A DNA stretch of 64,000 bases. Origin: Macrostomum lignano (Eukaryota). Of the stretch, positions 25,617-63,400 are shown piece by piece (within the stretch, counting starts at the first letter, position 1; each line of letters starts with the position of its first letter). A program made the position numbers and the translations under genes. Below the pieces are notes generated by a model. That model worked only from the letters and a program-made list of their open reading frames with translations, made no database searches and had not been told where the DNA came from. Where the stretch lies: assembly GCA_002269645.1 (NCBI GenBank), contig NIVC01003960.1, positions 3,502 to 67,501 of the forward strand. The letters run 5' to 3'.

Positions 25617-25850
25617 TCAGCCTCCCAGATCCTCAGTTGCTGGGCCAGACTCCCAGATCCTCAGTTGTTGGGCCAGCCTCCCAGATCCTCAGTTGTTGGG
25701 CCAGCCTCCCAGATCCTCAGTTGCTGGGCCAGCCTCCCAGATCCTCAGTTGCTGGGCCAGCCTCCCAGATCCTCAGTTGCTGGGCCAGACTCCCAGATCC
25801 CCAGTTTCTGAGCCAAACTTCCAGATCCTCGTTACCGAGTCAGACTCAAA
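25617..25850. repeat. 28-bp minisatellite, array 2 (same family as 23877-24076)
   Basis: Unit gttgctgggccagcctcccagatcctca. Confidence 0.93.
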
Positions 25851-26600
25851 CTTCAGTATCTTCAATACTAATTAGGTCAAGTTATATTGAACCAAAGAAA
25901 TTAAATTTTATCCGACATAGTTACCGTTTGTCCTTAACTTATTACTAACAAAAGGTGTTTTCCTAAGCAAATGCATGTTGAGTTCATTTCCTTCATTTAT
26001 TTATGAACTTGTTAATCTACATTTTCTCATTTACTGTACACCGGAGCCCTCTGTTCGTAATAATCTATCTGGCGTGTTTTAATTCCACTAGTTGGTCCCG
26101 CGCTTGTATGACTACACGCATAGGTATTCGTATATGAGTACTTAAAGATTCTCATTTTTCAGTGTATACTTTATTTCGAATAGTCTGTATTTGTGCAGCA
26201 CTAAACATTGTGAGAATTGTATTGATTTTATTTCCTTTAGTCATTAATATTACTACATGTATGTCTAATTTTGCATGTACACAGAGGCAACTGGTACAAC
26301 CGCTTCTCAGCTATACGAATATATACTCTTGTTTCCTCATATTTTCATTCATTTTGTTAAATATTATTGATTTCATTCATTTAAGAGCGGTATAGAGTTG
26401 TCTAATATTTTGCAGTGCTGTTTTGTCTTGAAGTCAATTTTTTAAAATACATTCATTGAGACTTCTTCCTCCACTAAATGGTTCTTGTTTGTATAATTAT
26501 TTGTTTAGCATATGTCAGGTAGATGTCATTGAGTTAGTTTTTGTCTTGGAGCAACTTAGAGAGACTGGAAACTTATCTCCTCAACACCATGCATGTCGCC

Positions 26601-29600
26601 ATGGAGCTGCACGGAGCGGCGGCAGCCCCAACTGAATCTGCGGTATTATTGAGTAGCCAATCTCAAACTGCAGAGAACTTGCAACATCACTCTGAGCAGT
26701 CGCCTGATCGGGGCAGCGAACCAGAGCAAGCCGTTCAGGAAGATGATGAAGGCAACTCTGAAGTTAACGAAGATTCAGAAGAGACTGGGCAACACGAGGC
26801 TGAGACTTCCTTAGATGAGTCGGGAAGTCAGCCGCATGAGGACACAATGCCAGCAGAGCAGGAGGAAGAGGTTGAGGAAGAAGAAGCAGAGCACGAAGAT
26901 GAGGAGGAGGCAGAGCACGAGGATGAAGAAGAGGTAGAGCAGGAGGATGAAGAGGAGGCAGAGCAGGATGAAGAGGAGGCAGAACAGGAGGATGAAGAAG
27001 AGGCAGAGCACGAGGATGAAGAGGAGGCAGATCAAGAAGATGCAGAAGAGGCAGGCAATGATACAAAAGACGAATCAACCGATTCAAGCTCGTCAGACAG
27101 CGATAGCGGTCCCTCAACCGATGGTGAATCGGCGAATTTGCGTCACAAATGCGAACAGTGCAACAAATCTTTTGTCTCCAAACGAAATTTAACAGTACAC
27201 AAACGGGTGCACAGCGGAGAAAAGCCGTTCCAGTGCAACATTTGTCAGAAACGGTTCACACAGAGGGCTCACATGAGAAGGCACATCGAAGCGGTGCACA
27301 AGGACGAATCTGAGCAGCAGAGCGACTCAGGCGATGCCCGTCGCCGCCGCCGCGGTGGCGGCAGAAAAAAGTCGTCAACTGACGTAAAGAAACACGAATG
27401 CGAGCAGTGCGGTAAAAAGTTCCGATGGAAAGCGGCGTTGGAGGTTCACTTCCGGGTGCACAGCGGCGAGAAGCCCTACCAATGCGAGGAGTGTCCAAAA
27501 AAATTTGCCCGGCCCAGTCACCTGCAGGGTCACGTGGCCGCGGTGCACAAGAAGGAGAAGCCGCACAAATGCCAGCACTGCGACAAAGCATTTGCCGATC
27601 CGAGCGCTCTGAGAGTTCATACTCGAACTCATACGGGCGAAAAACCATACGAGTGTAAAGTGTGCCACAAGAAGTTTAATCTGTCCAGTCAGCTGAGGGT
27701 GCACTTCAGGCTGCACACGGGAGAGAAACCGTTTCAATGCAACGTTTGCGGCAAGCGGTTTAGCCAGTCTAGCACTCTGTTCTCTCATTTGAAGAGTAAA
27801 ACTGGTAAGAAATCCCATTGTTTGTGTGAAGTTTTACTTACTACGGTTCAGAAAGGGTTTTGTATTTGCTGCTAGGCCTAAGAGTGTTGTGGCCTTGTGG
27901 TTAAAAGCGTTGGACTTACGACTGAAAGGTTGAGGGCGGAGGGTTCGATCCTCGACTCATTCGGAACAATTTGTGTCCTTGAGCAAGGCGCTTAACTCTG
28001 CATTGCTTCGGTTGTGCCAGCTGTAAAATGGGTGCCTGCATTAGCTGGGGTAATTGAGGGTGTGTGTGCGGCGACCCCCCAGTCCTTGGACTGAACAGCC
28101 GTACGCAGCCTTCAGATGCGTCGCGCAATAGCTGCGGCTGAGCTGTCGGTTGCACATCTGGCCGAATAATATAGAAGGGCGTTCTCCGGCTGGTGACTAG
28201 GGGGGGGGGAGGGGGCGCTGTATGTGCGATAAAGTATGTGCCTTGAGAAGTTGAGAAAGACTGTGTATAGAGGGTCTTCTACGAGTAATTAATCGCTGTG
28301 CTACTACTATCGGTGTAAATCTTATTTCAGTCCACGTGCGCCGCAACGAGCCTACAGTGCAAATCTATTACGCTCCTGTCGCGCCTCCGCAAGCAAATTT
28401 CTCCGCCGTGCAAAATGTACCGCCACAGCCTCCACCGCCGCCGCCGCCGCCACAACCGCCGCTGCAGGCGCAGTACATGCCCAATTTGCAGCCTAGCGGA
28501 GCAAACAACTGCGAATTGATGCCAGATTTATTGGAGACACTCTACGTGTCTGAAATGATGTCAGCCGGCGCGATGCCGCCTAGCCATCAACAGCAGCCGG
28601 TTAATAATTTTGTAATCAGCGGCGGCGCTGCTGACCAGCAGATGTCGGCGGTGATGCAGAACGGACCGCCACCGCAGGCTAATCTGGCTAGCAGTAGCTA
28701 CAGTGCGGGCGCGCCTGTAATCATAACTCGCTACCGATGCGCTCACTGCATTAAGACCTTCTCTAGCCAGGCAGACCTGGAGAAGCACCAGCGAGTGCAC
28801 AGTGCCGACCGGCCCTACCACTGCAACATGTGCGACAAGCGGTTCCTGAAGTCCAGCCATCTTCGAATCCACATTGCCGGGGTGCACAACAAGGAGCGAC
28901 CGTTCACCTGTCAGTACTGCGGCGGAGGCTTCGCCGACCGCGGCACGCTCAACGTGCACATTCGCAAGCACACGGACGAACGGCCCTACCAGTGCAAGAT
29001 GTGCGGCAAACGGTTCAAAAGCTCCAGCCAGGTCAGCACCCATTCGAGGATTCACACGGGCGAAAAACCGTTTAAGTGTCATCTGTGCGGCATGCAGTTT
29101 CGCATGTCTGGCCATCTGAACTATCATCTGAGGCGGCATAGCAAGGGTGAGTAGCTGTTTTTTTATATTTTGTAGCACTGCACCAAAGCTGCAGACAAAG
29201 TTGTTTGGCCTTATAAATCCGGAAATCCGATCTTACAAAAAATAGCAAATTTAGTCCTGTTAGATTTTGTGAATTAGAAATCTTATCCGTTAGCCGTATT
29301 TGCCAAACTTTTTCAGGACTAGCTGTCCAGCAGTACCAGCCGTCGCCAGAAGTTATGCCCGGTCCTAATCCGACACCGCAAGACTTGCATCAGCAACACC
29401 AACAGCATCAGCAGCACCAACAGCACCAGCAACATCAACAGCATCAGCAACATCAACAGCACCAACAGCATCAGCAACATCAGCAGCACCAACAGCACCA
29501 GAACCAGCAGCATCAGCATCAGCAGCATCATCATCAGTTACCCTCCGAGCTGGAAATCAGTAACTTTGTGCTCAATAGCATGCCTATGGCGCCTATGCAG

Positions 29601-31334
29601 CAGCAGCAGCAAAATATACCAACCATGAATGTTCCTAGCACTAGCGGCAGCAACTTCAATGATGCTGCTGCTGCTGCTGTTGCTCCGCCACCTGCCGCCG
29701 TTGAGTCCCGTTTCCGTTGCCTCAGCTGCATCAAGTCGTTTGCAAACCAGGCAGACCTGGAGAAGCACCAGCGAGTGCACAGTGCCGACAGGCCCTACCA
29801 CTGCAACATGTGCGACAAGCGGTTCCTGAAGTCCAGCCATCTTCGAATCCACATTGCCGGGGTGCACAACAAGGAGCGACCGTTCACTTGTCAGTACTGC
29901 GGCGGAGGCTTCGCGACCGCGGCACGCTCAACGTGCACATTCGCAAGCACACGGACGAACGGCCCTACCAGTGCAAGGTGTGCTTGAAACGGTTCAAAAG
30001 CTCCAGCCAGGTCAGCACCCATTCGAGAATTCACACGGGCGAAAAACCGTTCAAGTGCAACGTGTGCGGTATGCAGTTCCGCATGTCTGGCCATCTCACC
30101 TATCATCTGAGGCGGCACAACAAGCGTGAGTAGCTTTATAATTGTCAACGTTATCACACAGTCAACTTAGGTTCCACAGGATCGATTCGTGTTTGTGCCT
30201 GCGTACGTATCCGTGTGCTTTGATTTTACGTTCAGAAGCTGGTTGAGATTGTAGGCCCAGTTGAAATACCTGCTGTTACAATAGTGATTACGTGTTGGTT
30301 TCGTTCCAGCGCCTGTACAGCCGCCAGAAGTAGCTCAGGGCATGCTTCAGCATGCGGCCGACAATGCGCCCTCAATAGGTCAGCAGCAGTTGCAAGGTGC
30401 TGGTCAAGCCCAGCCTGACTCCTCTCTGAACGATGGCGATTCACCAGCGGGTCATCATTCAGCTCATGCCGCCGCGTCAAGCAGCTATAAGCCGAAGAAG
30501 AACTCAAAACAGACTGACTCTGAAGATGAAGACGATTCCGTTGATCTTGACAACGATTCGGACTCCGACAGGCCAGTCAAGCGTCGGCGTCACCGATGCG
30601 ATGAATGCGGCAAGAGCTTTGCTACTAAGCAAACTTTGAAAGTGCACCGTCGAGTTCACAGCGAGGATAGCAAGCCGTACGAATGCGACACTTGTGACAA
30701 ACGTTTCTCCCAGTCTGGCCATCTCAAGCGCCACATGGAGGTGGTGCATAAGAAGACTCTACTTCGACGTCTTCTAGAAAGAAATCTAGCTCAGGTAAAG
30801 CTGGCAAATCGGTGAAAAAGAAGCACCGTGCGAGCACTGCGGCAAGACGTTCCCGTGGAGGACAGCGTTGGAGGTTCACCTCCGGGTGCACAGCGGCGAG
30901 AAGCCCTACCAATGCGAGGAGTGTCCAAAGAAATTTGCCAGGCCCAGTCACCTGCAGGGTCACGTGGCCGCAGTGCACAAGAAGGAGAGGCCGCACAAAT
31001 GCCAGCACTGCGACAAAGCATTTGCCGATCCGAGCGCTCTGAGAGTTCATACTCGAACTCATACGGGTGAAAAACCCTACCAGTGTAAAGTGTGCGGCAA
31101 ACGATTTAATCTGTCTGGCAGCTGACCAGCCACAATAGGCTGCACACTGGCGAACGGCCTTTTCAATGCAACGTTTGCGGCAAACGGTTCGGCCATTCCG
31201 GCAGCCTGTCCACTCACGCCAGCAGGGTGCACACCGGTGAACGGCCCTACCAATGCCAGGTGTGCGGCAAACGGTTCACCCAGAATAGCGGACTGACCAC
31301 GCACTCTAAAGTGCATTTGAAGCAGCAGAATTGA
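26601..31334 (+). CDS. Poly-C2H2 zinc-finger protein A, 4 exons, ~25 fingers; 4 apparent 1-nt deletions in this assembly
   Basis: Exons ~26601-27804, 28331-29146, 29317-30125, 30310-31334, all introns phase 1 GT-AG. Repeated CxxC..HxxxH fingers with HTGEKPY-type linkers and an acidic N-terminus. The frame is restored by one extra base at ~29914, ~30755, ~30827 and ~31119. The start is chosen by similarity to gene B (MELH); an ATG at 26589 is also in frame. Confidence 0.85.
27880..28160 (+). mobile_element. tRNA-derived SINE with CORE-like domain, copy 1 (intron 1 of zinc-finger gene A)
   Basis: A-box-like tggccttgtgg and B-box gggttcgatcc, then tgtgtccttgagcaaggcgcttaactc...ctgtaaaatggg, which resembles the MIR/CORE consensus. 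A second copy lies at 39707-39997. Confidence 0.85.
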
Positions 31335-33282
31335 ATTAATAACTAATGCCTTCTGTGGCTCATTGCGCTATTCTTCTATTACTTATCAGTTTGTAACTAT
31401 TGCTAGGTGGTACTTAAGTACATTTTAATTTGAGTTGTTTATCATGGTTATAAAAATGCACCTAAGCCATTAGCTATGATATAATGTACTTGCTGTATGC
31501 CTTGTTTTGTTCGTATTGCTACACTTGATCTGCTTTATTTTCTCTCTGTTTATATACACTCGTATATAGGCACAGTTTTTGCTATTTCCCATTGTCTATT
31601 ATCTTCTACCTAAGCAGCATCTTTGTTTTGCTTTTTTTATTGATGCGTTTTATTGTCGACTCATCCCCAATGTTTATTTTTTTAATCACGTCGCTTATAT
31701 CTCATCGCACTTAGGTTGCGATGCACTTTTATTTATAATTATCTCTGCTTGTTAACGGAGAAAGGTTTAGTATAAGCAGCTTAGCAAAAATATTTATTAT
31801 ATACTGCTGACTCGCAAAAGTTGCATGCTGTTTATACATTCATTACGATACGGTTTTGCTTGTCACTGTAAGCAGTGAAAATTATGCTAATTTATTTTTT
31901 TTTGTCCTGCTACAATTTTGCGTATATTTTTTCCATTATTTACTCTGTATATGCACGAGTATTTAATTTTGTTCTGGCTAGCGCGATATAAATAAAACTC
32001 TAAAATTAAAAAGCTTCTATAGTCTATGGCCGGGCGAAAGTGGGGGGGGGGTCGTTCCACCCCTCCTCGCTTCTTTCACTGCACTTGTCTATGGCCGCGA
32101 CAGACCGGCTTCGGCCACGCTTATGGGAATGAATGAAGGAATACACTGGATTGCTCATCTGAAATAGTCTATGGTCGAGTTCTTTCCTCCAAACTTGGAA
32201 TTTACCCCCCCTAGGAATCTATTGGCTGATGAAAGTTAAAAATAATCCCCCGTAGGACTTGATTGGATGCTGAATCAGTCCATCAAATACATCTTTGGAT
32301 TTCCCTCAAATTTTCAGCAGCTAGACATGCTTGTAGGTAGAAACGTCTAAATAAAGCATCACGCTGTTGCCTGCGGACGTCTCACCGGCCCTGATCATTA
32401 ATGGAGACTGGAATGGGCGACCGGTCTGAGCCCTAACTGGTTTTGTTTTTGATTTAGTAGCGAGGGTTGAAATTACGTCTCCTATTGCTGTATTCTTTCA
32501 TCCATGCTTATGGGTCTCAAAGACAAAGAACTTTAAAAGATGGTTCAGGCCATTCTCGAGGGATTGCAACTTTCTTTTTTTTAAATTCGATTATCTTTTT
32601 GTGTATTTTTCCTTTGCATGCCTGATGTAGCTATGCGCTTGTTATGCGAAGCAATTTTTTAATAAAACTATAGTTTTTTTAGTTAAACTTTTATGCTTAA
32701 GATGTCCTTAACTCTTCTGGGAGCTATCTATTGTTACTATCATAATTTTTTACTTCACTTTTAACTTATTTTCATTGGCTATTTGTTTTATTGAATAGAC
32801 TTGCTTGCTTGCGTGTTGTCTACGAGTAAAACTAAGTGGGTTTTTTCTCTGCAAAGCGTCTTTTCTCTAAAAAATTCTATAAAAAGCTGTATTCTCGTAT
32901 ACACACCCTCTGGTTTTTTTGTTATAGTTTGCGTGCTTCTAGTGCAAAAACAACTTATTTAACTATAATCGACTATTTTGCGTTAGTAATTTGTACGTAC
33001 TTCATAGTTATAGTATTGCACCTTGCGTGAATTAGCAGGAATTAATTCAAACTGTCTGCTATAATTACACTTTATTGCTCGTATATATATGACTGCATAT
33101 TGTAGTGCAAAAATATACATTATGGACAAATAAATGCGTCATTTCGTTACTTATTTTTCAGTTTTATTCTAATAGAAACTCCGAAACAAAAGTAGGAATT
33201 TTCTCGCATATGAGTATAAAGCCCTCTAATGACTGAAGCGACTACTTACGCCATTGCGTCACTAGTAAATCAAAATTTGAAC

Positions 33283-33551
33283 CTCTGTAGCTGGCGCCCC
33301 CTCTTTAGCTGTCGCCCCCTCTGTAGCTGGCGCCCCCTCTTTAGCTGGCGCCCCCTCTGTAGCTGGCGCCCCCTCTGTAGCTGGCGCCCCCTCTGTAGAT
33401 GGCACCCCCTCTGTAGCTGACGCCCCTCTGTAGTTGGCTCCCGATCTGTAGCTGGCGCCCCCTCTGTAGCTGGCGCCCCCTCTGTAGCTGGCGCCCCCTC
33501 TGTAGCTGGCGCCCCTCTGTAGCTGGCGCCCCCTCTGTAGCTGGCGCCCTC
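33283..33551. repeat. 18-bp GC-rich minisatellite upstream of zinc-finger gene B
   Basis: Unit ctgtagctggcgccccct. Confidence 0.93.
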
Positions 33552-33825
33552 CTCGGATAAAATTTCAAACACTTCCTGACCGAGTTTGGCATCCCCCACC
33601 GTCACGCAGCATTTCCAAGATGAGGCCCGCATTAGTTTTTGGAGGGAAGTCATCCTTTTAAATTTTAAGGCTGAGGAATACCTTCACACACCGGAACTTC
33701 TACTTTCCGCTTTCCGATCTTCAACTTTCCTCAAACTTTCTATTCACGTGATGTCAAAAGCTACCCGTATTTAAAGGACGACAACAACAGCTGCAGTTTA
33801 TTTATTTATTTGCATTCATGCTCTG

Positions 33826-36800
33826 ATGGAGCTGCATGAAACTGCGGCAGCGGAATCTCTGCCAGCGAATCCCAATCCCAAGTCGGCATTAGTTTATCAA
33901 AATTCTGTAAACTCCGAGTCGAACTGCGAAGTCGAATGTAGTTCAGAAGTAGGTCAAGCCGACGATAGAAGCTCCTCCGAAGCTAGCGAAGAGGCTGAAC
34001 AATCCAAGTCCTCTGTGAACGAGTCTGCAAATCAGTCGCCGGAAGAGGTCACAATAGAACAGGAAGATAATGATGAGAGTGAGGCAAGCGGCTCTGAGCA
34101 CAGTAAATCTGACGAAAGCTCAGTGGATATTAAAAGAAAAAAAAGGGTTAAGCGACCGAAGCCGCGTCACCAGTGCGAGCAGTGCGGCAAGTTCTTTGCT
34201 TCGAAGAAGAATTTAAAAGTCCACTATCGCGTGCATAGCGGCGAGCGGCCATATCAGTGCGAGTATTGCCAGAAACGATTCACTCAGATGGGTCATCTGA
34301 AGTCTCACACTGAAGCTAAGCACGCTGATAAACTTCAGGAATCTGGCGCTGCTGGAGATGCTAATACAAAAGCTAAAAAGCTCTACCAATGCGTAGAGTG
34401 CGACAAAACTTTTCCTTGGAAGAATGCATTAGATATTCATTTTCGAGTTCACTCCGGCGAACGGCCGTTTAAATGCATCGAGTGCCCGAAGAAGTTCACT
34501 CGGCTAAGTCACCTGCAGGGTCACGTGGCCGCCGTGCACAAGAAGGAGAAGCCGCACAAATGCCAGCACTGCGACAAAGCATTTGCCGATTCTTGCTCCC
34601 TTCGAGTTCACACTAGAACGCACACGGGCGACAAGCCCTACCAGTGCAAAGTGTGCGACAAGAAATTCAGTCTGTCTAGTCAACTGACTCGTCACTCGAG
34701 GCTGCACACTGGCGAAAAACCCTACCAGTGCAATAGATGCGAAAAACGATTTAATCAGCCAAGCAGTCTAGCCAGTCACTTGAGAACGCATACTGGCGAA
34801 AAACCTTACCAGTGCACACTGTGCGGCAAAGGCTTCACTCAGTCTGGCAGCCTTGCTAATCATTTAAGGAGTCACACTGGTGAGTCGACTGTTAAATTTG
34901 AGTGTTGCGTTGTGTTGGAGAAACACCAAGTCAGATGAACGCAAAGGTTATTAATGAACTGGAATTTACGAAACACTGATGACAAACAGTAGAGAACTCT
35001 GCAAAGATACACCTGACACCTTTGAAATGATATGCTCAGCAACATTGAAAAGTCGCCACTCTTTGCTCCAGTGAGCAGGTCTTTCGACCAGCGCCTCCCG
35101 TCCAAGCTTCGATCCATCCAATCTTCGCCCTCCGCTCTTCCCAAATATTGTTGAGTAAATTTATTAGTTCAGAATTTAAGTGCACCCTGTCACAGTTTAG
35201 ATTAGCAAACTATCTAAATATTGACCTGCGAGACATTGAGAACTGCGTGACCCAATTCGCTGCTTTTTTTCACCTGACAGCGTACTTTGTTGTTTTTGTT
35301 GTTGTGACCCAAGATCACTAACGAGAACAGGACCTGCCGAAAGTGCCATGTAGAGGTAGAAAGTTCACGTCCTGTTTAAGTGTAGTTGGAACTTCTATAG
35401 TGCTTCCCGTGATAAATTTGAATAGGAGGTCCCAGATAAAGTTAGGAATTTAAAAAATCTTACAGCAGATGATTAAATATTTCGCCTACTGACTCAAGAA
35501 AATATATACGTAATGGAAATTGAGGCAAAATCCATCAAAGACATGACCCTAGCCACAATGCAAATGTCATGAAGCTTCATTCCGAATACAAGCTTAAATA
35601 CTATGTTTGCGCAAGATACTTTATTTTGACTCTCTATGTCGGGAATTGTAGCCTAGTAGTTGAAGCTTTGAAGCCCAACAGCTTCCTATTTCTAAACAAA
35701 TCCGAAAACCTCGAGCCGTACTTCCTACCATTAACTATTTAAACTACTGACCGCTACTAATAGTAGGGTAATTGAAAAAACTTGACTTCTTCGACAAATT
35801 CCATGAAAAATCTTTGTTGTTGTCGGATTGACTCCTGATGCCAATCCAATTTCAACTTATGCTTGTATAATATTTCAGAAAACGTGCAGCACAATGAAGC
35901 GACAGCTGCGTCAGCATTTTACGTCCCCAACGCGCAGCCGCATCAGTCGAGTTTTCCTATGCCGAACGCTCCTCCCCCGCCGCCGCTGCCGCCGCCACAC
36001 TTCATACCGGATCTGCAACCAAGTGCAGCAAATCATAGCGATCTTGTGCCAGACCTGCTAGAGACTTTGTACGTGTCCGAGATGATGCCAGCAGGTGCGA
36101 TTAATAGTTTCGTACTCAGCGGCGAGTTAATGAGCTCCGTTGCTATGCCGAATGGACCGAGCTCCGGAGCTGGAGCTTCTACGATTGAATCGCGTCTCCG
36201 ATGCGGCCACTGCGTCAAGACGTTCTCTAACGAGGCCGACCTGGAGAAGCACCAGCGAGTGCACAGCGCCGAACGGCCGTTCCCCTGCGAACTGTGCGAC
36301 AAGCGTTCATGCGGGCCAGCCACCTGAGAATCCACATCAACGGGGTGCACAAGAAGGAGAAGCCGTTCTGCTGCCAGTACTGCGGCAGAGGCTTCGCCGA
36401 CCGCGGCACGTTGAACGTCCACATCCGGAGTCACACCGGGGAGCGTCCGTTCCCGTGCAAGGTGTGCGGCAAGAGGTTCCGAAACTCCAGCCATCTCAGC
36501 AATCACTCCAGACTGCACACTGGTGAAAAACCGTTCAACTGCGACGTGTGCGGCAAGCAGTTCCGACTGTCCGGTCATCTTGCCTATCATTCGAGGCAGC
36601 ACAAACGTAGGTTCACCATTTATTTTCATTGTTCTAATCTATATCGTTTCTTTGAAACTGTACTTAGTTTTTATCGACAGCATTATTATACAGATTGGCT
36701 CGTACTTTTTGTTTAGTTCAAACAGAGTGAAATATTTTATACATCCAGGTCAGGACGCCGCTCCTAACGAAGGCACAGAGCACACTGAGGAGCAGGCCCT

Positions 36801-38447
36801 AAATCTTCCCAATAATGAGGCGCATTATTCTGGAGACTTGGAAGACAATTCGCACGAAGACGACTGCGATTCAGATCCTGGTTGCGTAGAGGAGCGGCAC
36901 TGTTTGGCGCACGATGCCAACCAGCCGGGCCCATCCAATGCGGTCTCTATTGAGCAATCGGGTGTTCCAATGCCCAGCCAGCAAGAGATTAACACTTTCG
37001 TGCTCAACGGCATGCCCGCAATGACAGTGGCGTCAGCTCAGAACGGGTTGGTGGTTGCTAATCCAGCTGATAGCATCAGCAATGCCAGCTTCAATGCTGT
37101 CCCGCCAGCTGTAGTGGAGCCTCGCTACCGATGCGGCCACTGCGTCAAGACGTTCTCTAACGAGGCCGACCTGGAGAAGCACCAGCGAGTGCACAGCGCC
37201 GAACGGCCGTTCCCCTGCGAACTGTGCGACAAGCGGTTTATGCGGGCCAGCCACCTGAGAATCCACATCAACGGGGTGCACAAGAAGGAGAAGCCGTTCT
37301 GCTGCCAGTACTGCGGCAGAGGCTTCGCCGACCGCGGCACGTTGAACGTCCACATCCGGAGTCACACCGGGGAGCGTCCGTTCCCGTGCAAGGTGTGCGG
37401 CAAGAGGTTCCGAAACTCCAGCCATCTCAGCAAGCATTGGCGAATTCACACCGGAGAAAAACCTTTTAAATGCGACGTGTGCGGCAAGCAGTTCCGACTG
37501 TCCAGCCATCTCACCTACCATTCAATTCGCACAAATGTAAGACGCTTGTATTGTAGCTCAGATTACATTTTTAACTCCAATTGTGCTTAGATATAGTGTA
37601 GCGTTCATTTTTTTAGTTCCTACCAAGCGACGTTACGCGGCCGCTAATCAAGCTCAGCCGACTCAACAGCAGCAATCGGTGCTGGCCCGTCCCGGCTTGC
37701 TCCACTGCCCGACGAAGAATCGACCAGGAACTCGTTGGAAGATGGCGAACAGGAAGAGACGCAACCAACGGAGGTACATTCGACAGCGAAGTCTAGCAGG
37801 AAGAAGGCTTCAAGCCGGCCTAAGAAGGCTAAAGATAATTCCTCGACAGCAAAGAAGCGCTACCCATGCGAGCACTGCGAGAAAAGCTTCATGTGGAAGA
37901 GCGATCTAAGACGTCATATCAGAGTGCACAGCGGCGAGCGGCCGTTCGAGTGCGACACCTGCCAGAAAGGCTTCACCAGGCTGAGCCATCTGCAGGTCAC
38001 ATCGCGGCTGTGCACCGGAAGGAGACGCCGCACAAGTGCCAGCACTGCGACAAATCATTCGCCGACGCGTGCGGTCTAAGGGCGCACGTACGAACGCACA
38101 CGGGTGAAAAGCCCTACCAGTGTAACGTGTGCAACAAGCGGTTCGCTCTGTCTGGTCAATTGAGCACTCACACTAGAGTGCACACTGGTGAACGGCCTTA
38201 TCAGTGCAAAGTGTGCGACAAACGATTCATTAGCTCAGGTCAGCTCACCTGTCATTCAAGACTGCACACCGGTGAGCGACCCTACGAATGCAACGAGTGC
38301 GGTAGGAAATTCAGCCAATCGTACAGTCTGAACTATCACAAGATGGTGCACTCGGGTGAAAAACCCTTCCAATGCGAAGTGTGCGGCATGCGGTTCATCA
38401 GATCGGACAGTCTGCTGATGCACTCCACCACTGTACACGCCAAGTGA
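33826..38447 (+). CDS. Poly-C2H2 zinc-finger protein B, 4 exons, ~25 fingers, tandem paralog of A; 4 apparent 1-nt deletions
   Basis: Exons 33826-34879, 35879-36606, 36749-37536, 37617-38447, all introns phase 1 GT-AG. Same exon architecture as gene A. The frame is restored by one extra base at ~36305, ~37530, ~37688 and ~37996. Confidence 0.85.
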
Positions 38448-44075: not shown

Positions 44076-44190
44076 ATATTATTTAAGAAAATTAATTTTG
44101 TTTATTATTGAAAATATTAATATTGCCTTTGTGAGTTTAAGCTTCTCTTTTAGACCGCTACAGGTATTAAAATGTAAATGGTTCTGTCAG

Positions 44191-45197
44191 TAGATAGATA
44201 GAGCTGCCAGTGGATAGATAGAGCTGCCAGTGGATAGATAGAGCTGCCAGTGGATAGATAGAGCTGCCAGTGGATAGATAGAGCTGCCAGTGGATAGATA
44301 GAGCTGCCAGTGGATAGATAGAGCTGCCAGTGGATAGATAGAGCTGCCAGTGGATAGATAGAGCTGCCAGTGGATAGATAGAGCTGCCAGTGGATAGATA
44401 GAGCTGCCAGTGGATAGATAGAGCTGCCAGTGGATAGATAGAGCTGCCAGTGGATAGATAGAGCTGCCAGTGGATAGATAGAGCTGCCAGTGGATAGATA
44501 GAGCTGCCAGTGGATAGATAGAGCTGCCAGTGGATAGATAGAGCTGCCAGTGGATAGATAGAGCTGCCAGTGGATAGATAGAGCTGCCAGTGGATAGATA
44601 GAGCTGCCAGTGGATAGATAGAGCTGCCAGTGGATAGATAGAGCTGCCAGTGGATAGATAGAGCTGCCAGTGGATAGATAGAGCTGCCAGTGGATAGATA
44701 GAGCTGCCAGTGGATAGATAGAGCTGCCAGTGGATAGATAGAGCTGCCAGTGGATAGATAGAGCTGCCAGTGGATAGATAGAGCTGCCGGTGGATAGATA
44801 GAGCTGCCAGTGGATAGATAGAGCTGCCAGTGGATAGATAGAGCTGCCAGTGGATAGATAGAGCTGCCAGTGGATAGATAGAGCTGCCGGTAGATAGATA
44901 GAGCTGCCAGTGGATAGATAGAGCTGCCGGTGGATAGATAGAGCTGCCAGTGGATAGATAGAGCTGCCGGTGGATAGATAGAGCTGCCAGTGGATAGATA
45001 GAGCTGCCGGTGGATAGATAGAGCTGCCGGTAGATAGATAGAGCTGCCAGTGGATAGATAGAGCTGCCAGTGGATAGATAGAGCTGCCAGTGGATAGATA
45101 GAGCTGCCAGTGGATAGATAGAGCTGCCAGTGGATAGATAGAGCTGCCAGTGGATAGATAGAGCTGCCAGTGGATAGATAGAGCTGCCAGTGGATAG
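44191..45197. repeat. 20-bp minisatellite x50, highly homogeneous
   Basis: gagctgccagtggatagata; the first 29 units (44201-44780) are identical. Confidence 0.98.
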
Positions 45198-51400: not shown

Positions 51401-54400
51401 CTTCCGTTGCTGCCGGCTTGTCATCTTTTCTTGGCTTCATAAGTCTCCAGTTGGAACCATTTCTCTGTCGGTAGTCTAATGCGATCAAACCGTGTGTTGG
51501 CTTCGGTTTGGGGGGAAGCCGAGCTTGGGAAAGAATCGAGCGATGTGTTTCTCGACTGATATCTCCTCCCCTCAGGGGAGTGGCGGAATCTGATATGGGA
51601 TAACGCTTGTCAGACCAGATTGCCATGAATGGCCATGCAGCTAAAGGATTGACAAGTGCGCTTATACATGATCTATTTGAATGCACCCGTTTGACTTGCC
51701 TTTGCCGATCTCCGGACAAAAGTCCGTCTGCGTTTTGAATTCTTTTTTTGAGTCCTATTTTTCTTGATTATTTAACTTCACAGGCAACGCTGGACTTTGA
51801 GATCAATTACTATTCGCCCGACTCGCAAATTGGCGACTGGAGACAGGACGAATTCGACTATCCGGTGCCCCCGATGCGCCCCGGAGCGGCCGGAGAGGAT
51901 CAAGAGGACAATGCCAGGTGAGGAAAAGGATGCAGATCTATTCATATTCATTTGGGACTTTTGTGTGCACGAGAATTGGTCGATGGGTTGTCGTGATTCA
52001 CAGCCATGATGGCCAACCTCCCAAGCCACAGAGAGTGCACACTCCTGACGATTAGAAAGTCAAAGCCGCTGTACACCCTCTGTGAGCGTGTTTTTGATTG
52101 CGTGCCTGTGTACAGTTTTGGCGCGCGCGAAACACTTGTATCTTTGGTTGGCAATTTTACTTATAAACGAATCACAATGGACAAGCGTTAATTTGAAAAA
52201 TACCGTCTAGCAGAGACATTGATTTCTGTAGCCACTATAAAATCGATATCATACTATTACCTTCGTTATTTCAGCATCCATTTCTCAGCAATCAATGCGC
52301 ATCAGTTAGATGACTTGCCAAACCAACTCAATCTTTTGTTACACTTCCAGTCGGATCAGCTTCTCAGACGCGCAGTCTCTGATAAAGGAGAATCGAAACA
52401 TGCTGGCGCTGGCCCAAGGCGACGAGGCCGGCTCCCTCATGACTGGCGAGGATGACGCCTCGTTGGGTAACGCGATGCGAAAGTAAGCGCTCTCCGGCGT
52501 TTTAATCCGTACTGAGTGCCTGAACGCCCCTGTAGCTGACACTCTTTCACCGTCGACCTCTCCTCTCCCCCCAGGGCAGACCCAATAAATCAATCCTGTC
52601 TCCGGCAGAAACTCATCGACTGTCGAGATCTTATTCCCTCTCTGCTGCTTAGTGGGCAACCCTCTGACTATCTCTCAAGTTCTTTCTCTCTGGCTTTTAT
52701 CTGCGCTCCTATTAGTTAGCACCACTTGATTCTCTTTAACTCTTTGAGCAAAGTGTACTGCTGCAAAGATTTTATCTTGAAAGATTTAGCTGTCTCCACT
52801 TGAAAGTGATCCACTACTCTACTCGCAAATAGACTTGATAGCAGTAAATTTTATTTTAATGACCTTTTACCTATGAGATGAGGCATTAAAGATATACGTT
52901 TTTATTAGCTTCTCGAGCGACCGTTCCGTATGACCTTTACCGCAGGACTTACCAGAGAAAGTTCAGATAAAGAACCTATACCATGCTTACCGTATTTAAT
53001 TTACTTTGAATACCGCAGCAAACTTGGGCTGTGATTAGAGAATAAATTTAACTGAGAGTTCTTGCCTCATGGCGAGTTGCTGCACCTGTTGCACTGAGGG
53101 TTCAATGCAGAACTTTTTTCTCTGTTCTGTTTAAGCTCCCCCTGTCCGCCTCCTAGAATAGCAAATAACTCACTGAATGCGCACAGTTGTGAATGCATTT
53201 TGTTCTTCTCTGTATTTTCCTCAACTTTTTTGCTTGAGCCATTGTTTCACAGCTGTTGCTCAAGTACAGCGAGTGGCCTATGGGCTGTAAAGCATAGAAG
53301 CCATGGCTTTTCATACATAGAACTTTTTTCCAATCCCATTAGGAGAAAGAGAAGATTTTTCAACTCAAAATGATTCTAGGCAGGACGATGGATCTCCAAA
53401 TTTTAATGAGGGGTTCGATTTTAGCTCAATTTTTCGCGGATGACACGTTAGGGCCGGGAAAAGTGTACTCATCCTTAACAAAGAAACAAACACAAAGATC
53501 ATTTTGGTAAAGGGTTTTATAGCCTTTAATAATCTAATTGCTTTAAGTATTTATTACTAGGCTAGCACTTTTTATTTGGCCTCAAATGAACTCATTACTA
53601 CAATCTTCTGATGAATGCCAGTACAAGAGCAAACTCAACCAGTGCGTATCTGCTTTTGCTTTAGTGCAGCGCAGTTTAGACTGAGGAACTTCAGAGCTCG
53701 CCCTGACGTGTATCTCCCATTCCTTCTTTCTCCCCCCGCTCTCGTTCCCCCCTCGCCACTCCTGGTGAGTCAATATTTGAGTAGCCAGGTTGCACTTACT
53801 GGTTTATAGGTCTGGAAAAAAGGAACTGATTCTCCTATGCTGCATGGCAGGAGTATTATTGCCTTATCTGTCTCTGACTCACCGTATCTTCGCACGAATC
53901 TCATATCCTCTTGATGTTTTTTGTTTGCCAAATAAGCTCCAGTTAGTGTTTAGACACTGGGGGCTTTTGGCGCTGCTGCAGATGAAGGCGGCATCTTTCC
54001 ACTGAACCCTGAACACTCACACGGATGTACAACGGCCCTGGCTTTCTCATTGTAATGCTTTATTGAAATTTACGTCCATTAACCTGAAACTGAGGTAGTC
54101 ATCGTTTTTTATTTAAGTAAATTTACCTTTAGCCTTTTCCATTATAATACTATTTTATAACAAAAAGATAGGGCCTTGACTTTCATCCAGAAGACCGACA
54201 GCGCGAATGTCTCTATTAAATCAGAAAAGAAATTATTTTAACATAAAAATTTTGAGATTTAAGATTTAGCCTTTCGAAATACCTTCTCCTTTTTCACAGT
54301 TAATTCCATTTACTTGATTAAACATTCCGCCCTGAGAAAACTTTTGAAGTGCTCTAGAATGAACATGTCCCTAAATAATGCAGCACAACACTAGGATTAA

Positions 54401-57400: not shown

Positions 57401-60400
57401 GAATAATAATAACTATTGCTTTACTGCTTCTTTGTAATCTTGAGGTAGAAGTTTCTTTTTTATGCAATTGCGTAGCAGGATATGTATTTTAAGAAATTTT
57501 TGATTCACGCACCTGTAGAAAAATAAGTCTAATTACTAGTACCAGGTATCAGTCAAAAGACCATCTGATATCTGGATGAAGTAAGCATAATATTCCAAGC
57601 ATCCATTTTTTTAATTGAGAGTTCATAACAGTCGACTTTTTGGCAACATGGTTAACATTGGCTTGACTATAAAGCTCTTTGGTGGATCAAACATTGGTTT
57701 GAATCTACAGTTATTGTGATTTTTGTCACAGCAGCCATGCAGTAAATTGTTGATGCTATTTTACATACCTTGAAGCGCAACAGCAAACAAAAAATCGAAG
57801 CTAACAGCTAGATATTTAAAGCGGTTTCTTACGATTGAAGTCGATATATTCATATTTTAGTTCTAAACAGTAAAAGTCAAATAAAATACGTTCAAACTAC
57901 TAAGTACGAGCGTAGTTAGTAGTTAACTACAAAGCATGGTCTTTTGACGTTTGAAAGTGTTTTATTATGATTTCTACGAAATGGGCACCACAATGAATTA
58001 CACGTATATTAGTACAAATCGCACGCATCGTAAAAAGTAATCAATGCTATTTAAAGGGTCGGGTTTCATTTTCGGAAGCATATTTTCGCTTGAACCTTTG
58101 TAACACTGCACATTCTTTAGCTACTACTTAAGGTTCAAGTTCAGTAGCGACTATAGAAAATGGCGACTATAAGTTTTTATCCAATCTGTACAGGCAAAAT
58201 GTTGCACTGCTAGAACTTATGTAACCTGCTTTTTGCTTTCCCCAAAAACATTGTCATTGCATAATTTGTTGCATAAAATCTGCTGCCATCGATTTCTTTT
58301 CGCTTTCAGTCGCGACCGAAGGTACGTTGATTTTTGTAAACCAAAGCCTATTTTCGACCAGGCGGAATCCATAACAGAAATCTTTTTTTTAGAATTTGCA
58401 ATCTTTCATTTGAACTCTTGAGACTTCCAGAGTACTTATTTATTACTGTGCTTATTTCTTATTTCTAATCTTCGCATGCCTTCAATAGAGCACAATTTAA
58501 ACCTCTACATATATAGGTAAAACTGTAAACTGCATTCACATTCTGCTTACACATTATTCTTTTTATCCTTAATTTTATTATTATTATTTTGGTATGACGA
58601 TGTACATCAATTTATTTCGATTTCTACACAAAAACAGAAAGCAAAATTTGAACAGCTCAATATTTGATTATTATTCGCTACCTCACGCTGAGCTAAATTC
58701 CACCTAATTACCGTTCCCGTGTCCTGACTAACTGGCAATTTTATACTGATGGGGCTTCTTAGCTTCCTAGCTTCTGCCTAAAATATTTAACTTGTTAACT
58801 TGTCTTATTCGACAATTGTTTTAATCGCACTGGTTAGGATCAGTCCCTTAATTCGATTGGAAGGCCGATAATTTTACTTTATTGCAGCGCGATTTAATAA
58901 AAAGCTGTTAAACTAATACTCCGAAGTATTTTAAACATTTGCGTATATATAATCACTATCAATATTTTAGGAAAAACTAAACAAAAAGAAAATCAAACTA
59001 AGGCAGCCAATAAAATTAAAAGTTTTCTTGGGTCTCTTCGTTGTTTTCCCTAGAGGGGTTTCCCTTCAGAAAGTTTCTCCAAGTTGCAGGACGTTTCCCA
59101 GCAGGAGGTTCTCCCGCAGTGAGTTTCTCCCGCAGTGAGGTTCTCCCGCAGTGAGGCTCTCCCGCAGTGAGGTTCTCCCGCAGTGAGGCTCTCCCGCAGT
59201 GAGGCTCTCCCGCAGTGAGGCTCTCCCGCATTGAGGTTCTCCCGCAGTGAGGTTCTCCCGCAGTGAGGCTCTCCCGCAGTGAGGCTCTCCCGCATTGAGG
59301 TTCTCCCGCAGTGAGGTTCTCCCGCAGTGAGGCTCTCCCACAGTGAGGCTCTCCCGCATTGAGGTTCTCCGCAGTGAGGTTCTCCCGCAGTGAGGCTCTC
59401 CCGCAGTGAGGCTCTCCCGCATTGAGGTTCTCCCGCAGTGAGGTTCTCCCGCAGTGAGGTTCTCCTGCAGTGAGGCTCTCCCGCATCGAGGTTCTCCCGC
59501 AGTGAGGCTCTCCCGCAACGAGGTTCTCCCGCAGTGAGGTTCTCCGCAGTGGCACCACAATGGGCACCACAATGGGCACCACAATGAATTACACGTATAT
59601 TAGTACAAATCGCACGCATCGTAAAAAGTAATCAATGCTATTTAAAGGGTCTGGGTTTCATTTTCGGAAGCATATTTTCGCTTGAACCTTTGTAACACTG
59701 CACATTCTTTAGCTACTACTTAAGGTTCAAGTTCAGTAGCGACTATAGAAAATGGCGACTATAAGTTTTTATCCAATCTGTACAGGCAAAATGTTGCACT
59801 GCTAGAACTTATGTAACCTGCTTTTTGCTTTCCCCAAAAACATTGTCATTGCATAATTTGTTGCATAAAATCTGCTGCCATCGATTTCTTTTCGCTTTCA
59901 GTCGCGACCGAAGGTACGTTGATTTTTGTAAACCAAAGCCTATTTTCGACCAGGCGGAATCCATAACAGAAATCTTTTTTTTAGAATTTGCAATCTTTCA
60001 TTTGAACTCTTGAGACTTCCAGAGTACTTATTTATACTGTGCTTATTTCTTATTTCTAATCTTCGCATGCCTTCAATAGAGCACAATTTAAACCTCTACA
60101 TATATAGGTAAAACTGTAAACTGCATTCACATTCTGCTTACACATTATTCTTTTTATCCTTAATTTTATTATTATTATTTTGGTATGACGATGTACATCA
60201 ATTTATTTCGATTTCTACACAAAAACAGAAAGCAAAATTTGAACAGCTCAATATTTGATTATTATTCGCTACCTCACGCTGAGCTAAATTCCACCTAATT
60301 ACCGTTCCCGTGTCCTGACTAACTGGCAATTTTATACTGATGGGGCTTCTTAGCTTCCTAGCTTCTGCCTAAAATATTTAACTTGTTAACTTGTCTTATT

Positions 60401-63400
60401 CGACAATTGTTTTAATCGCACTGGTTAGGATCAGTCCCTTAATTCGATTGGAAGGCCGATAATTTTACTTTATTGCAGCGCGATTTAATAAAAAGCTGTT
60501 AAACTAATACTCCGAAGTATTTTAAACATTTGCGTATATATAATCACTATCAATATTTTAGGAAAAACTAAACAAAAAGAAAATCAAACTAAGGCAGCCA
60601 ATAAAATTAAAAGTTTTCTTGGGTCTCTTCGTTGTTTTCCCTAGAGGGGTTTCCCTTCAGAAAGTTTCTCCAAGTTGCAGGACGTTTCCCAGCAGGAGGT
60701 TCTCCCGCAGTGAGTTTCTCCCGCAGTGAGGTTCTCCCGCAGTGAGGCTCTCCCGCAGTGAGGTTCTCCCGCAGTGAGGCTCTCCCGCAGTGAGGCTCTC
60801 CCGCAGTGAGGCTCTCCCGCATTGAGGTTCTCCCGCAGTGAGGTTCTCCCGCAGTGAGGCTCTCCCGCAGTGAGGCTCTCCCGCATTGAGGTTCTCCCGC
60901 AGTGAGGTTCTCCCGCAGTGAGGCTCTCCCACAGTGAGGCTCTCCCGCATTGAGGTTCTCCCGCAGTGAGGTTCTCCCGCAGTGAGGCTCTCCCGCAGTG
61001 AGGCTCTCCCGCATTGAGGTTCTCCCGCAGTGAGGTTCTCCCGCAGTGAGGTTCTCCTGCAGTGAGGCTCTCCCGCATCGAGGTTCTCCCGCAGTGAGGT
61101 TCTCCCGCAGTGAGGCTCTCCCGCATCGAGGTTCTCCCGCAGTGAGGTTCTCCCGCAGTGAGGTTCTCCCGCAGTGAGGTTCTCCCGCAGTGAGGTTCTC
61201 CCGCAGTGAGGTTCTCCCGCAGTGAGGTTCTCCCGCAGTGAGGTTCTCCCGCAGTGAGGTTCTCCCGCAGTGAGGTTCTCCCGCAGTGAAGTTCTCCCGC
61301 TGCAAAGTTTTCTAGCAGGAGAATTTTCCACTGTAAGATTCCCGCAGCGAAGTTCTTCCTCCGAGTTTTTTCTCGCCGAGGTTTTGCTATAAATATTTGT
61401 CAGTTTCTTGCACTCCCCCCCCCGTTTTTCTTATCAAGTCTTACGCGTCTACAGTATATTGTAGTTCTCTTGAAATACGTGAACGTGATGAATACGTGAC
61501 CAACCCACCAGTTTGGTCATGGTACCAACTGATCTATAGCGCATACTTCAGTATTTCCCATTTTTTGTTTCTAGTTTAGCTTTTTTCTCTTACTCTCTCA
61601 GATCTCGCAGATCCAGACCAGAGAACAACAGATTGCATTAGTTTTTAAGTTGAAATTTCACAACAAGAAATGTGTTGGACTGTTTGCGTTGAACACTTCC
61701 AGGATTATTAGCATTTTGTATGTCAGCATCGTTATCTTCCTTCTTGTGAAAGTATTTCATTCGTCAGTATAGTTCTAGTTCTCATACTGATTACAAACTC
61801 AACAACATTTTTCGTTTGCCTGAAACTTGGTAAAAAAAACTCGCTAACTTTGAAAAAAATATTTGCAAAGCTAAAAAGACCAACCTTGGTGCATTCCAGA
61901 CTCAGACCAGGAAGTCGAAATCCAATGATGAAGAAGACATTGAAGCGTGAGTGTCTCTTCATCTATTTATGTATTTCAAATTCATAATTATAGCTACAGT
62001 TTTGTACACCCACACCGTCGGTGCCTACTTATGCAGCAACCTGTTGCTGCCCAGCGGTGTCCCAATCAAGCGCCAGAACGCTGAAATCTCCGTTAGAATC
62101 TATCGGGCCGAAGATCTGCCCAAGATGAACACTGATTTCATGGCCACTATCAAGCAGGCAATCACGGGCGACTCAAAGCCACTAGCTGATCCCTACGTTC
62201 AGGTTTCCTTTGCTGGACATTCGGTGAGCTTTTCCGAATTTTAATTAGACAGCTAGATTGTAAACTAGGTTTTTTGGAGTGTTTTGACTAATTTTATAAT
62301 AAAATTTATAACTAACTTATCTTACATGCATGTAAAGCGTTTTAGCGAAATTTAAGAGTACTATTTAAATTAGGATTGAAAACAAAACAGACAGACAGTA
62401 AGTAGGGCGCAGAGCCCAAAATGGGTTTCGAGCGCAAGTAAGAAAAGGAGGGGTGGAGTGCGCGACTAAGGAAAGAGGGGAGATTGAAGAGCCAATCAGA
62501 GGCGGCGAGGGAGAGAGATAAGAATTCACAACGCTGAACGAGACAGAGAGGGAGAGAAAACAGAGTAAACAGACGAGTGCAGATGAACCAAGAACTGACA
62601 TAACAAACGTACGAGTGCGTAGCTTAACATTGACATAAGTTTAACGGGAATGATGCAGAATTTGGGCTTCAAAAGTCAAGTTAACTTATTTACTCCGTAC
62701 AAATGCATTGTTTATAACAAACCTGCAGAATGTTTTTGCGCACGTATCAAAGCCGTCTAACTTATTGCAGGGCAAGACGAAGTTGAAAAAGAACACGTAC
62801 GATCCACAGTGGAATGAGGCGATCGTGTTCACTGAAATGTTCCCGCCGCTGTGCAACCGGGTTCGAATCTCCGTCTACGACTGGGACACCGTCTACAACG
62901 AGTGCATCGCGACGCACTTCATTGACCTCAATCAGATTATGAACGACGCCGAGAGCGGTGAGTTTAAAAATTAGCAATTTACTACTATCAAATTTTGTGT
63001 CTTCGAAGTAAGAGCCCCTGTCTGAGACTAAGTTTGTACCGCGCTAGGTTTGTGGTGGCTTTGAGTAATAAAGAAACTGGGTTTTTCATTTTTTAAAAAT
63101 ATAACATTTGAAAATGCAAGTTTTCCCTGAAATCAAAGCTTTTTATTGTAATCTGCTACTGAGACAAAAAATTATATTAATATTTATTGTATCGTCGGAG
63201 CGTAGCAAATGTGTGGTGATTTATTTATGCATGTGCAAAGAACGACCTTTGGACCTTGTACATGGAAATGTTTGGTAGGCTGTCGCTGGATTCGCAACCA
63301 TGAAGGCCAACCCCTTAATATCATAGCCAAGTCAACTTAATATCATATTTTCAGGCTTCATGCCTACATTTGGACCGTCATGGATAAATCTTTACGGCAC

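Follow-up and report, generated by a model that had tools for sequence, protein, structure and literature searches.

In Ikaros (IKZF1) and in the Broad-Complex and lola genes of Drosophila, exons that encode zinc fingers are swapped or dropped by splicing. The modules differ in specificity, and the isoforms have been documented experimentally. Here we describe two zinc-finger (ZNF) genes, A and B, whose finger modules also lie on separate exons, with intron phases that allow modules to be omitted in frame. The two genes adjoin each other on the forward strand of a 64-kb stretch of DNA (the window), which is the final 64 kb of contig NIVC01003960.1 from assembly Mlig_3_7 (GCA_002269645.1) of the flatworm Macrostomum lignano. 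Each gene has four exons and, after correction of the reading frame, 25 C2H2 fingers. Unlike those of Ikaros, Broad, and lola, the modules of A and B are near-duplicates, and their predicted specificities do not contrast. (For a general survey of transcription factor isoforms, see bioRxiv 10.1101/2024.03.12.584681.)

Our best explanation, which we think has a probability of about 75%, is that A and B are old tandem paralogues. They would encode nuclear poly-C2H2 proteins of about 1285 and 1134 amino acids (a.a.) that lack a recognizable effector domain. Each gene would have grown by duplication of a cassette exon, which comprises a disordered spacer and a collinear core of five fingers (a to e), and the first and last exons would have gained further fingers. 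After the duplication that gave rise to A and B, gene conversion would have held the middle arrays of each gene near-identical, while the spacers stayed distinct. Both genes would be maintained by purifying selection, their four exons would be spliced constitutively, and the breaks in their reading frames would be errors in the assembly. If this is correct, then A and B are a clean, small case of a many-finger gene that grew by duplicating whole exons (a spacer plus five fingers). Intragenic gene conversion would keep the DNA-binding modules alike as the spacers drift, and the gene would persist under purifying selection in a neopolyploid flatworm. These genes do not open a long-standing question.

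Other described systems share some of these features. Krüppel-type poly-C2H2 proteins (ZNF568 is the best sequence match in PDB) have tandem C-X2-C-X12-H-X3/4-H fingers and TGEKP-like linkers, as A and B do. Compared to Krüppel-type proteins in general, the fingers of A and B are in four clusters, one per exon, with spacers of 80-180 a.a. between them. The KRAB-ZNF clusters of tetrapods resemble A and B in that many-finger genes were duplicated in tandem in a repeat-rich genome. However, A and B lack KRAB and spread their fingers over several exons, their predicted contacts are conserved, they appear to be under purifying selection, and the pair is old (synonymous divergence, or dS, of about 0.7-1).

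ZNF423 (OAZ) is a multi-cluster factor with arrays that act as separate or homotypic modules. BCL11B is a factor of this type as well, with several finger clusters that are parted by long disordered spacers, as in A and B (PMC13225276). We found no sequence relationship to these two proteins beyond the finger fold. The clusters of A and B are recent duplicates that were kept alike by gene conversion. Given their near-identical contact residues, the clusters of A and B would be expected to read similar short motifs.

Cassette exons of genes A and B

The start codon of gene A begins at 26601, and the stop codon of gene B ends at 38447. We refer to the first and last exons of each gene as X1 and X4 and to the middle exons as Y1 and Y2. 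The exons, with their lengths as assembled in nucleotides (nt), are:

26601..27804, + strand: gene A exon 1 (X1), with the start codon, an acidic E/D-rich spacer (about 26862-27060), fingers a'-b', a basic linker (27336-27371), core a-e, and a phase 1 donor; 1204 nt
28331..29146, + strand: gene A exon 2 (Y1), with a Pro/Gln-rich spacer, a 13-residue motif (28522-28560), and a five-finger core; 816 nt
29317..30125, + strand: gene A exon 3 (Y2), with a poly-(HQQ) spacer, an 11-residue motif (29553-29585), and a five-finger core; 809 nt
30310..31334, + strand: gene A exon 4 (X4), with a spacer that includes a basic stretch (30570-30596), eight fingers, and the stop codon; 1025 nt
33826..34879, + strand: gene B exon 1 (X1), with the start codon, an acidic/Ser-rich spacer, a basic stretch (34132-34167), and eight fingers; frame intact; 1054 nt
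35879..36606, + strand: gene B exon 2 (Y1), with a spacer that includes the 13-residue motif (36049-36087) and a five-finger core; 728 nt
36749..37536, + strand: gene B exon 3 (Y2), with a spacer that includes the 11-residue motif (36985-37017) and a five-finger core; 788 nt
37617..38447, + strand: gene B exon 4 (X4), with a spacer, seven fingers, and the stop codon; 831 nt

Every exon is a low-complexity spacer followed by an array of fingers. The arrays have 7, 5, 5, and 8 fingers in gene A and 8, 5, 5, and 7 fingers in gene B. The fingers fit the pattern C-X2-C-X12-H-X3-5-H, and 45 distinct fingers are present even in the uncorrected sequence. (The final finger of A exon 1 is degenerate and ends in HLKSK.) Within each cluster, the fingers are joined by TGEKP-type linkers of seven residues, such as TGEKPYQ, SGEKPFQ, or KKEKPHK. 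We compared seven of the spacers (E ≤ 0.1) and the whole protein (E ≤ 0.01) to Pfam. The zf-C2H2 and zf-H2C2_2 families scored 363.5 and 425.4 bits, versus cut-offs of 25.2 and 40, and only C2H2 families were found: KRAB (PF01352), BTB (PF00651), SCAN (PF02023), ZAD (PF07776), and Zfx_Zfy_act had no match.

All eight exons share an ungapped, collinear core of 134 a.a. with five fingers, a-b-c-d-e. Finger a reads C..C.K.F.....L..H.RVHS and finger c reads CQ[HY]C...FAD...L.VH.R.HT, while fingers d and e are ordinary. Finger b has an unusual H-X4-H spacing (...SHL..H[IV]A.VH.KE[KR]P) and is at the same position in the core of every exon. The cores are 61-81% identical among X exons, 72-94% identical among Y exons, and 50-56% identical between X and Y exons. 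X exons have an additional pair of fingers upstream of the core (a'-b', which was lost from B exon 4) and one to three additional fingers downstream. These alignments indicate that the genes are probably four-fold repeats of one cassette exon (a spacer plus the five-finger core) that grew by exon duplication.

The introns are 526, 170, and 184 nt long in gene A and 999, 142, and 80 nt long in gene B, and they have a lower G+C content than the exons (0.30-0.50 vs. 0.49-0.58). Their donors are GTAAGA, GTGAGT, or GTAGGT, and their acceptors are pyrimidine-rich and end in CAG or TAG. All six introns are in phase 1, although for the third intron of gene B this is so only once a missing base is restored 13 nt 5' of the donor. 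Exon duplication is tolerated only if the phase is the same at both ends, which explains why phase 1 is uniform. Also, the introns descend from one or two ancestral introns, so the six phases are not independent events. Symmetric phases are not evidence of regulated skipping.

Much of this anatomy was described in an initial annotation, which was made from the nucleotide sequence. It gave the same end coordinates and the same finger counts for each exon, it placed all introns in phase 1, and it recognized no KRAB, BTB, SCAN, or ZAD domain; our analyses agree. Its view of the genes as modular also stands, as every exon encodes a single finger cluster, and in an intact copy of gene A (see below), both internal exons have phase 1 at either end. 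It described the exons as an X-Y-Y-X series of cassettes. Each exon is indeed a spacer plus an array, but the series is better described as four copies of one cassette. And the equal total of 25 fingers per gene, which it pointed out, is a coincidence: the totals arose from differing gains and losses at the ends of the genes and do not reflect a mirrored design.

The H-X4-H finger is reminiscent of ZFX and ZFY, which have an acidic N-terminus and H-X4-H fingers that read ...RPS.L..H.AAVH. A and B have an acidic N-terminal region as well, and their finger b reads F-x-R-P-S-H-L-x-x-H-V-A-A-V-H and is followed by C-x-H-C-D-K-x-F-A-D-P. We considered whether A and B belong to this family and rejected the idea: Zfx_Zfy_act is absent (by Pfam), there is just one H-X4-H finger per five-finger core, and there is no strict alternation of finger types.

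The pair looks like a lineage-restricted member of the ordinary poly-C2H2 class. Among 5.8 billion proteins, we found no orthologue of gene B, only generic poly-ZNF proteins with a local identity of at most 44%. A search of the same collection with an alignment and profile of the Y1 spacer gave 6 candidates, and none of them matched. Given the lack of both orthologues and spacer motifs in this collection, the earlier suggestion that the genes are lineage-specific seems to hold. PDB searches with the X and Y cores found generic matches only (ZNF568, CTCF, and PRDM9). The top match for the frame-corrected gene B was LOC143448625 from Clavelina, which we rejected as an orthologue.

Another protein from M. 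lignano has a similar layout. P0011 (1117 a.a., named "Gastrula zinc finger protein XlCGF57.1-like" in UniRef) is built from a spacer of about 130 a.a. and a finger array, repeated four times. Its arrays open with an H-X4-H finger (CDTCQKKFSRKxHLKAHISAVH), which resembles finger b of A and B. However, its spacers have no relation to those of A and B, and the identity between P0011 and gene B is just 34% in the best local alignment. P0011 may be a cassette-type relative, in which case there would be a wider family in M. lignano, or the model may have merged tandem genes into one.

Frame breaks and the copy on the sister contig

In the assembled sequence, both reading frames are interrupted: after splicing, translation would meet stop codons in exon 3 of gene A and exon 2 of gene B. 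By aligning paralogous exons to each other, we located eight single-base deletions that break the reading frames:

29914, gene A exon 3: GCCGAC reads GCGAC
30761, 30829, and 31119, gene A exon 4
about 36305, gene B exon 2: GCGGTT reads GCGTT
about 37523, gene B exon 3: 13 nt before the donor
somewhere in 37648-37866, gene B exon 4
about 37996, gene B exon 4: CAGGGT reads CAGGT

If one base is added at each of these sites, then both genes have open reading frames (ORFs) without internal stop codons, of 1285 a.a. for gene A and 1134 a.a. for gene B.

There is an intact copy of gene A in the assembly. Contig NIVC01001817.1 (the sister contig) aligns to 25616-32074 of the window at 97.4% identity. 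Its copy of gene A has the same splice sites, exons of 1204, 816, 810, and 1028 nt, and an uninterrupted coding sequence (CDS) of 3858 nt, which encodes 1285 a.a. It has exactly one extra base at each of the four sites in gene A (29914, 30761, 30829, and 31119). Exon 1, in which we identified no break, has the same length and frame in both contigs. We counted 20 synonymous and 6 non-synonymous changes between these copies. In other words, the proportion of synonymous sites that differ (pS) is 0.025, which corresponds to the neutral divergence of paralogues, while the proportion of non-synonymous sites that differ (pN) is 0.002, for a pN/pS of 0.08.

The initial annotation had claimed that any internal exon could be skipped without a frameshift. 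This is not so for the genes as assembled (exons of 1204/816/809/1025 nt in A and 1054/728/788/831 nt in B), as A exon 2 is the only internal exon whose length is a multiple of three. It is true of the intact copy of A (816 and 810 nt) and of the corrected gene B (729 and 789 nt).

We think that the eight breaks are most likely deletion errors in the consensus sequence of Mlig_3_7, which relies on PacBio continuous long reads (CLR), rather than biology. Alternatively, A and B might be young pseudogenes at this copy of the locus, with real frameshifts, and one of three subgenome copies would be decaying after a recent genome duplication. As a neopolyploid, M. lignano has about three copies of most loci (PMC10733133), and this redundancy would permit loss. 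Also, the 7.26 kb of ZNF coding sequence contains eight breaks, but there are none in about 3 kb of neighboring coding sequence and none in the sister copy of gene A. On the other hand, all eight lesions are one-base deletions, and there are no nonsense codons in 2419 codons. The pN/pS of 0.08 between the copies of gene A does not indicate relaxed constraint. Exon 4 of gene A has three deletions but just one substitution relative to the sister contig, and at six more one-base differences nearby, the window is always shorter. (There are 8 one-base indels across 29.3-31.8 kb, and the window lacks the base in all 8.)

To gauge assembly error from within the window, we used a direct tandem duplication that lies outside both genes:

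57980..61144, + strand: direct tandem duplication, with copies of 1.57 kb at 57980-59551 and 59571-61144 that end in a 16-nt minisatellite

Across the first 1420 aligned bases (57980-59400 vs. 59571-60992), the copies have no substitutions and three one-base indels. Consensus errors leave such a pattern, as does a very recent duplication. The density of indels in this non-coding DNA, about 1 per 950 nt, is the same as for the eight breaks in the ZNF coding sequences.

The assembly is also documented to be error-prone. Canu was used to build Mlig_3_7 from PacBio CLR, Illumina, and 454 reads, and REAPR classified 63.95% of its bases as error-free (PMC5730564). About 85% of the M. lignano genome has three paralogous copies, with a divergence of 2.2% overall and 1.1% in coding sequences, and 93% of read pairs map to several loci (PMC10733133), which hampers polishing with short reads. 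Overall, it seems very unlikely that the genes are pseudogenes, and we continue with the view that the breaks are consensus errors. More broadly, because single-base deletions in Mlig_3_7 reach about 1 per kb in places, apparent frameshifts or "pseudogenes" in this assembly should be checked against paralogous contigs.

Gene conversion, selection, and DNA-contact residues

Within each gene, some of the finger arrays are much more similar than their divergence between the genes would suggest:

28734..29156, + strand: gene A conversion tract, which includes the Y1 fingers and 10 nt of intron and is 94.3% identical to 29714-30135 (Y2)
36198..36609, + strand: gene B conversion tract, which includes the Y1 fingers and is 94.6% identical to 37128-37539 (Y2)
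27386..27787, + strand: core fingers of gene A X1, 87.9% identical to the X4 core (30817-31216)

Y1 and Y2 of the same gene are 92-95% identical at the amino acid level, and the dS of the Y arrays is 0.16-0.23 within genes versus about 0.7 between A and B. Between genes, the parts of the Y exons that encode fingers are about 80% identical. The spacers give a different picture, as they group by position while the fingers group by gene. For example, the spacers of A exon 2 and B exon 2 share the 13-residue motif and [VI]N.FV[IL]SG, and those of A exon 3 and B exon 3 share EI..FVLN.MP. This implies that Y1 and Y2 are older than the split of A from B and that the finger tracts were homogenized later, within each gene. 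Because the tract in gene A reaches 10 nt into the intron, exons 2 and 3 of gene A are followed by identical GTGAGTAG donors. The X1 and X4 cores of gene A appear to be a second conversion tract, either older or partial; the positional counterparts of X1 and X4 in gene B are 73-80% identical to those of A.

The 13-residue motif (28522-28560 in A and 36049-36087 in B) is acidic-hydrophobic and lies in a fast-evolving spacer, yet it is invariant between the genes despite their dS of about 0.7-1. We found no match for it among the 5.8 billion proteins. The acidic N-terminus and this conserved motif are candidate sites for effector function, interaction, or activation.

For the Y arrays, the ratio of non-synonymous to synonymous divergence (dN/dS) is 0.19-0.25, in recent and old comparisons alike. 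Together with the comparison to the sister contig, this indicates that both genes are probably under purifying selection (dN/dS or pN/pS of 0.08-0.25).

We also examined the predicted DNA-contact positions of each finger (-1, 2, 3, and 6). Between positional counterparts in A and B, 55 of 83 contact residues are identical (66%), as compared to 96 of 168 residues at other variable positions (57%; P = 0.17, Fisher exact test). Within each gene, the contacts of Y1 and Y2 differ at just 1-2 of 20 positions: they read SADK/NADK-KSHI-DGTV-SSQT-MGHY in gene A and NADK-RSHI-DGTV-NSH[NK]-L[GS]HY in gene B. The contacts of the X cores read W.A[VI]-RSHG-D[SC][AS]V in A1, A4, and B1, while B4 is more diverged. 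In gene A, the X1 and X4 cores have the contacts of their first three fingers in common.

So, each protein is predicted to have two X-type modules and two Y-type modules, with similar specificity within each type. It would be a sequence-specific DNA-binding protein that is suited to sites at which the same short motifs are clustered or repeated. Since the contacts of the modules are near-identical, skipping an exon would change the number of modules and not the repertoire of fingers.

Splicing, deposited gene models, and neighboring genes

About 30% of the genes of M. lignano are trans-spliced, with a 35-nt spliced leader that ends in ATG, and operons have gaps of about 100 nt between genes (PMC8629364). 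Because of these narrow gaps, introns 2 and 3, which are short (80-184 nt), warranted a second look. The "exons" might instead be separate, small ZNF genes of a polycistronic unit, with spliced leaders added at the AG acceptors and translation starting at internal ATGs. There are in-frame ATGs near the starts of A exon 3 (29355) and A exon 4 (30342). Also, as the initial annotation correctly stated, read-through of the GTGAGTAG donors after exons 2 and 3 of gene A reaches a stop after two codons (...SKGE* and ...NKRE*). At the other four donors (A exon 1 and B exons 1-3), however, a stop comes only about 20-35 codons past the end of the exon. Strong GT donors, at an identical codon position and with matching phase 1, are present at 6 of 6 boundaries. 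The ATG of a spliced leader would be out of frame with phase-1 exons, and joining it to A exon 3 would give ATG GAC TAG, which ends translation at once. Upstream of the first internal ATG, the spacers stay open and conserved. Furthermore, there are no AATAAA or ATTAAA hexamers in the introns of gene A, and we found no poly(A) hexamer anywhere inside that gene.

The deposited gene models bear on this question as well. On the sister contig, the deposited gene, which is RNA-guided, extends from 3 nt before the ATG to the stop codon of exon 4, and its CDS (1016 a.a.) joins exon 1 to that stop, which argues against separately transcribed exons. We consider separate genes to be highly improbable, and we favor one cis-spliced gene per set of four exons.

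The deposited products of gene A are 357 a.a. on this contig (26598-31125) and 1016 a.a. on the sister contig (16888-21617 of locus L002, which is from that contig). Judging from its coordinates, the 357-a.a. model appears to jump between homologous positions in X1 and X4. The 1016-a.a. model lacks exactly 270 residues (810 nt) relative to the full ORF. Exon 3 is 810 nt long, and Y1 and Y2 are offset by this distance in the mRNA as well. This model could be an isoform that skips exon 3, or it could be an artifact of collapsing the repeat. We looked up the exact sequences of the exon-3-skipped protein and of nine Y1/Y2 chimeras, and none of them are in the protein collection. A nearby gene, which encodes COP9 signalosome subunit 3 (CSN3), illustrates that the deposited CDSs of Mlig_3_7 are not plain translations of the contigs: the deposited protein (PAA49162.1, which is P0121) has 11 glycines where the GCG repeat in the contig (23622-23686) encodes 21. 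We caution that the deposited models are unreliable for internally repeated genes of this assembly.

The initial annotation proposed that the cassettes are alternatively spliced, by skipping or retention, into different sets of fingers, and that the pair is a flatworm counterpart of the KRAB-ZNF clusters that target repeats. Splicing could work in this way: every intron is in phase 1, the lengths of the internal exons are multiples of three in the intact copy of A (816 and 810 nt) and in the corrected gene B (729 and 789 nt), and retention of intron 2 or 3 of gene A would end translation after two codons. The deposited product that is 270 residues short has the size expected if exon 3 is skipped. 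And the genome is very repeat-rich, as the initial annotation said: minisatellites and simple repeats make up about 15% of it (PMC5730564). But skipping would not yield new specificities, as Y1 and Y2 have nearly identical contacts and the X cores of gene A share those of their first three fingers, so the proposed assembly of different finger repertoires is not supported. The 810-nt difference has the other explanation given above, in terms of a collapsed repeat; the exact exon-3-skipped protein was not in the collection; and the apparent X1-X4 jump in the 357-a.a. model suggests that deposited models are unreliable at this locus. As for the analogy to KRAB-ZNF clusters, the contacts are no more variable than the rest of the finger between A and B (66% vs. 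57% identical), the dN/dS and pN/pS values are low, and there is no effector domain. These values give no sign of the diversification expected in an arms race. This proposal seems unlikely to be correct.

A related idea, which we consider to be quite improbable, is that the cassettes are used in variable number, either by skipping Y or X exons or by internal addition of the spliced leader. The proteins would then have one to four copies of two near-identical five-finger modules. If this were true, then avidity or spacing might be tuned for binding tandemly repeated DNA, gene conversion would keep the modules matched, and the deposited model that is short by exactly 810 nt would be a real isoform.

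Several observations weigh against our preferred explanation, that A and B are constitutively spliced, functional genes that grew by exon duplication and that were broken by errors in the assembly. First, the coding sequences of the neighboring GLUT-like gene and CSN3 (about 3 kb) have no frameshift, while about 3 would be expected at the density seen in the ZNF genes (P ~ 0.04). Given these clean neighbors and the clean sister copy of gene A, the errors would need to be clustered locally. Second, the four breaks in gene B were judged only by analogy and by comparison to paralogous exons. Third, neither of the deposited products (357 and 1016 a.a.) is the four-exon ORF of 1285 a.a. Fourth, the 50-56% identity of X and Y cores is only modestly above that of unrelated poly-ZNF arrays, so the case for a shared ancestry of X and Y depends mostly on the collinearity of the cores and on the H-X4-H finger that they have in common. 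Finally, we infer the function of these proteins from their domain class alone.

The other genes that we identified in the window are:

2213-12068, + strand: GLUT-like sugar transporter of the major facilitator superfamily, with a deposited product of 607 a.a. and at least 5 exons
20625-23707, + strand: CSN3, with three exons and an intact frame; it matches human CSN3 in PDB (E = 5e-34)
54375-63602, + strand: several exons that encode ferlin-like C2 domains; the gene continues past the end of the contig

In an exhaustive HMMER search, CSN3 was 100% identical to PAA49162.1 and PAA63734.1 from M. lignano, and the next-best match was 46% identical. The deposited locus that encodes this protein has the same sequence as 10628-33707 of the window. 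The 8 nt directly 5' of the deposited start of the CSN3 CDS (20620-20627, ATTGCATG) match the last letters of the spliced leader (...TTATTGCATG). The match could be a coincidence, or it could be related to the trimming and annotation of 5' ends. Gene A has no such match to the 3' end of the spliced leader before its start. Scans of the 64-kb window with Rfam and for tRNAs did not find anything.

Repeats are common in and around the neighboring genes. The introns of the GLUT-like gene contain a (GTCT)n repeat (7564-7857) and minisatellites with units of 34 nt (8869-9351) and 92 nt (11128-11414). Large microsatellite or minisatellite arrays lie at 15216-18036, 18838-20428, 21129-22015, 22490-23137, and 44184-45197, and two of these are within introns of CSN3. 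The array types are (ATCT)n (2.8 kb), a 49-nt unit with 32 copies, a 32-nt unit with 27 copies, and 20-nt units with 33 and 51 copies. Overall, satellite arrays take up much of the intergenic and intronic space of the window.

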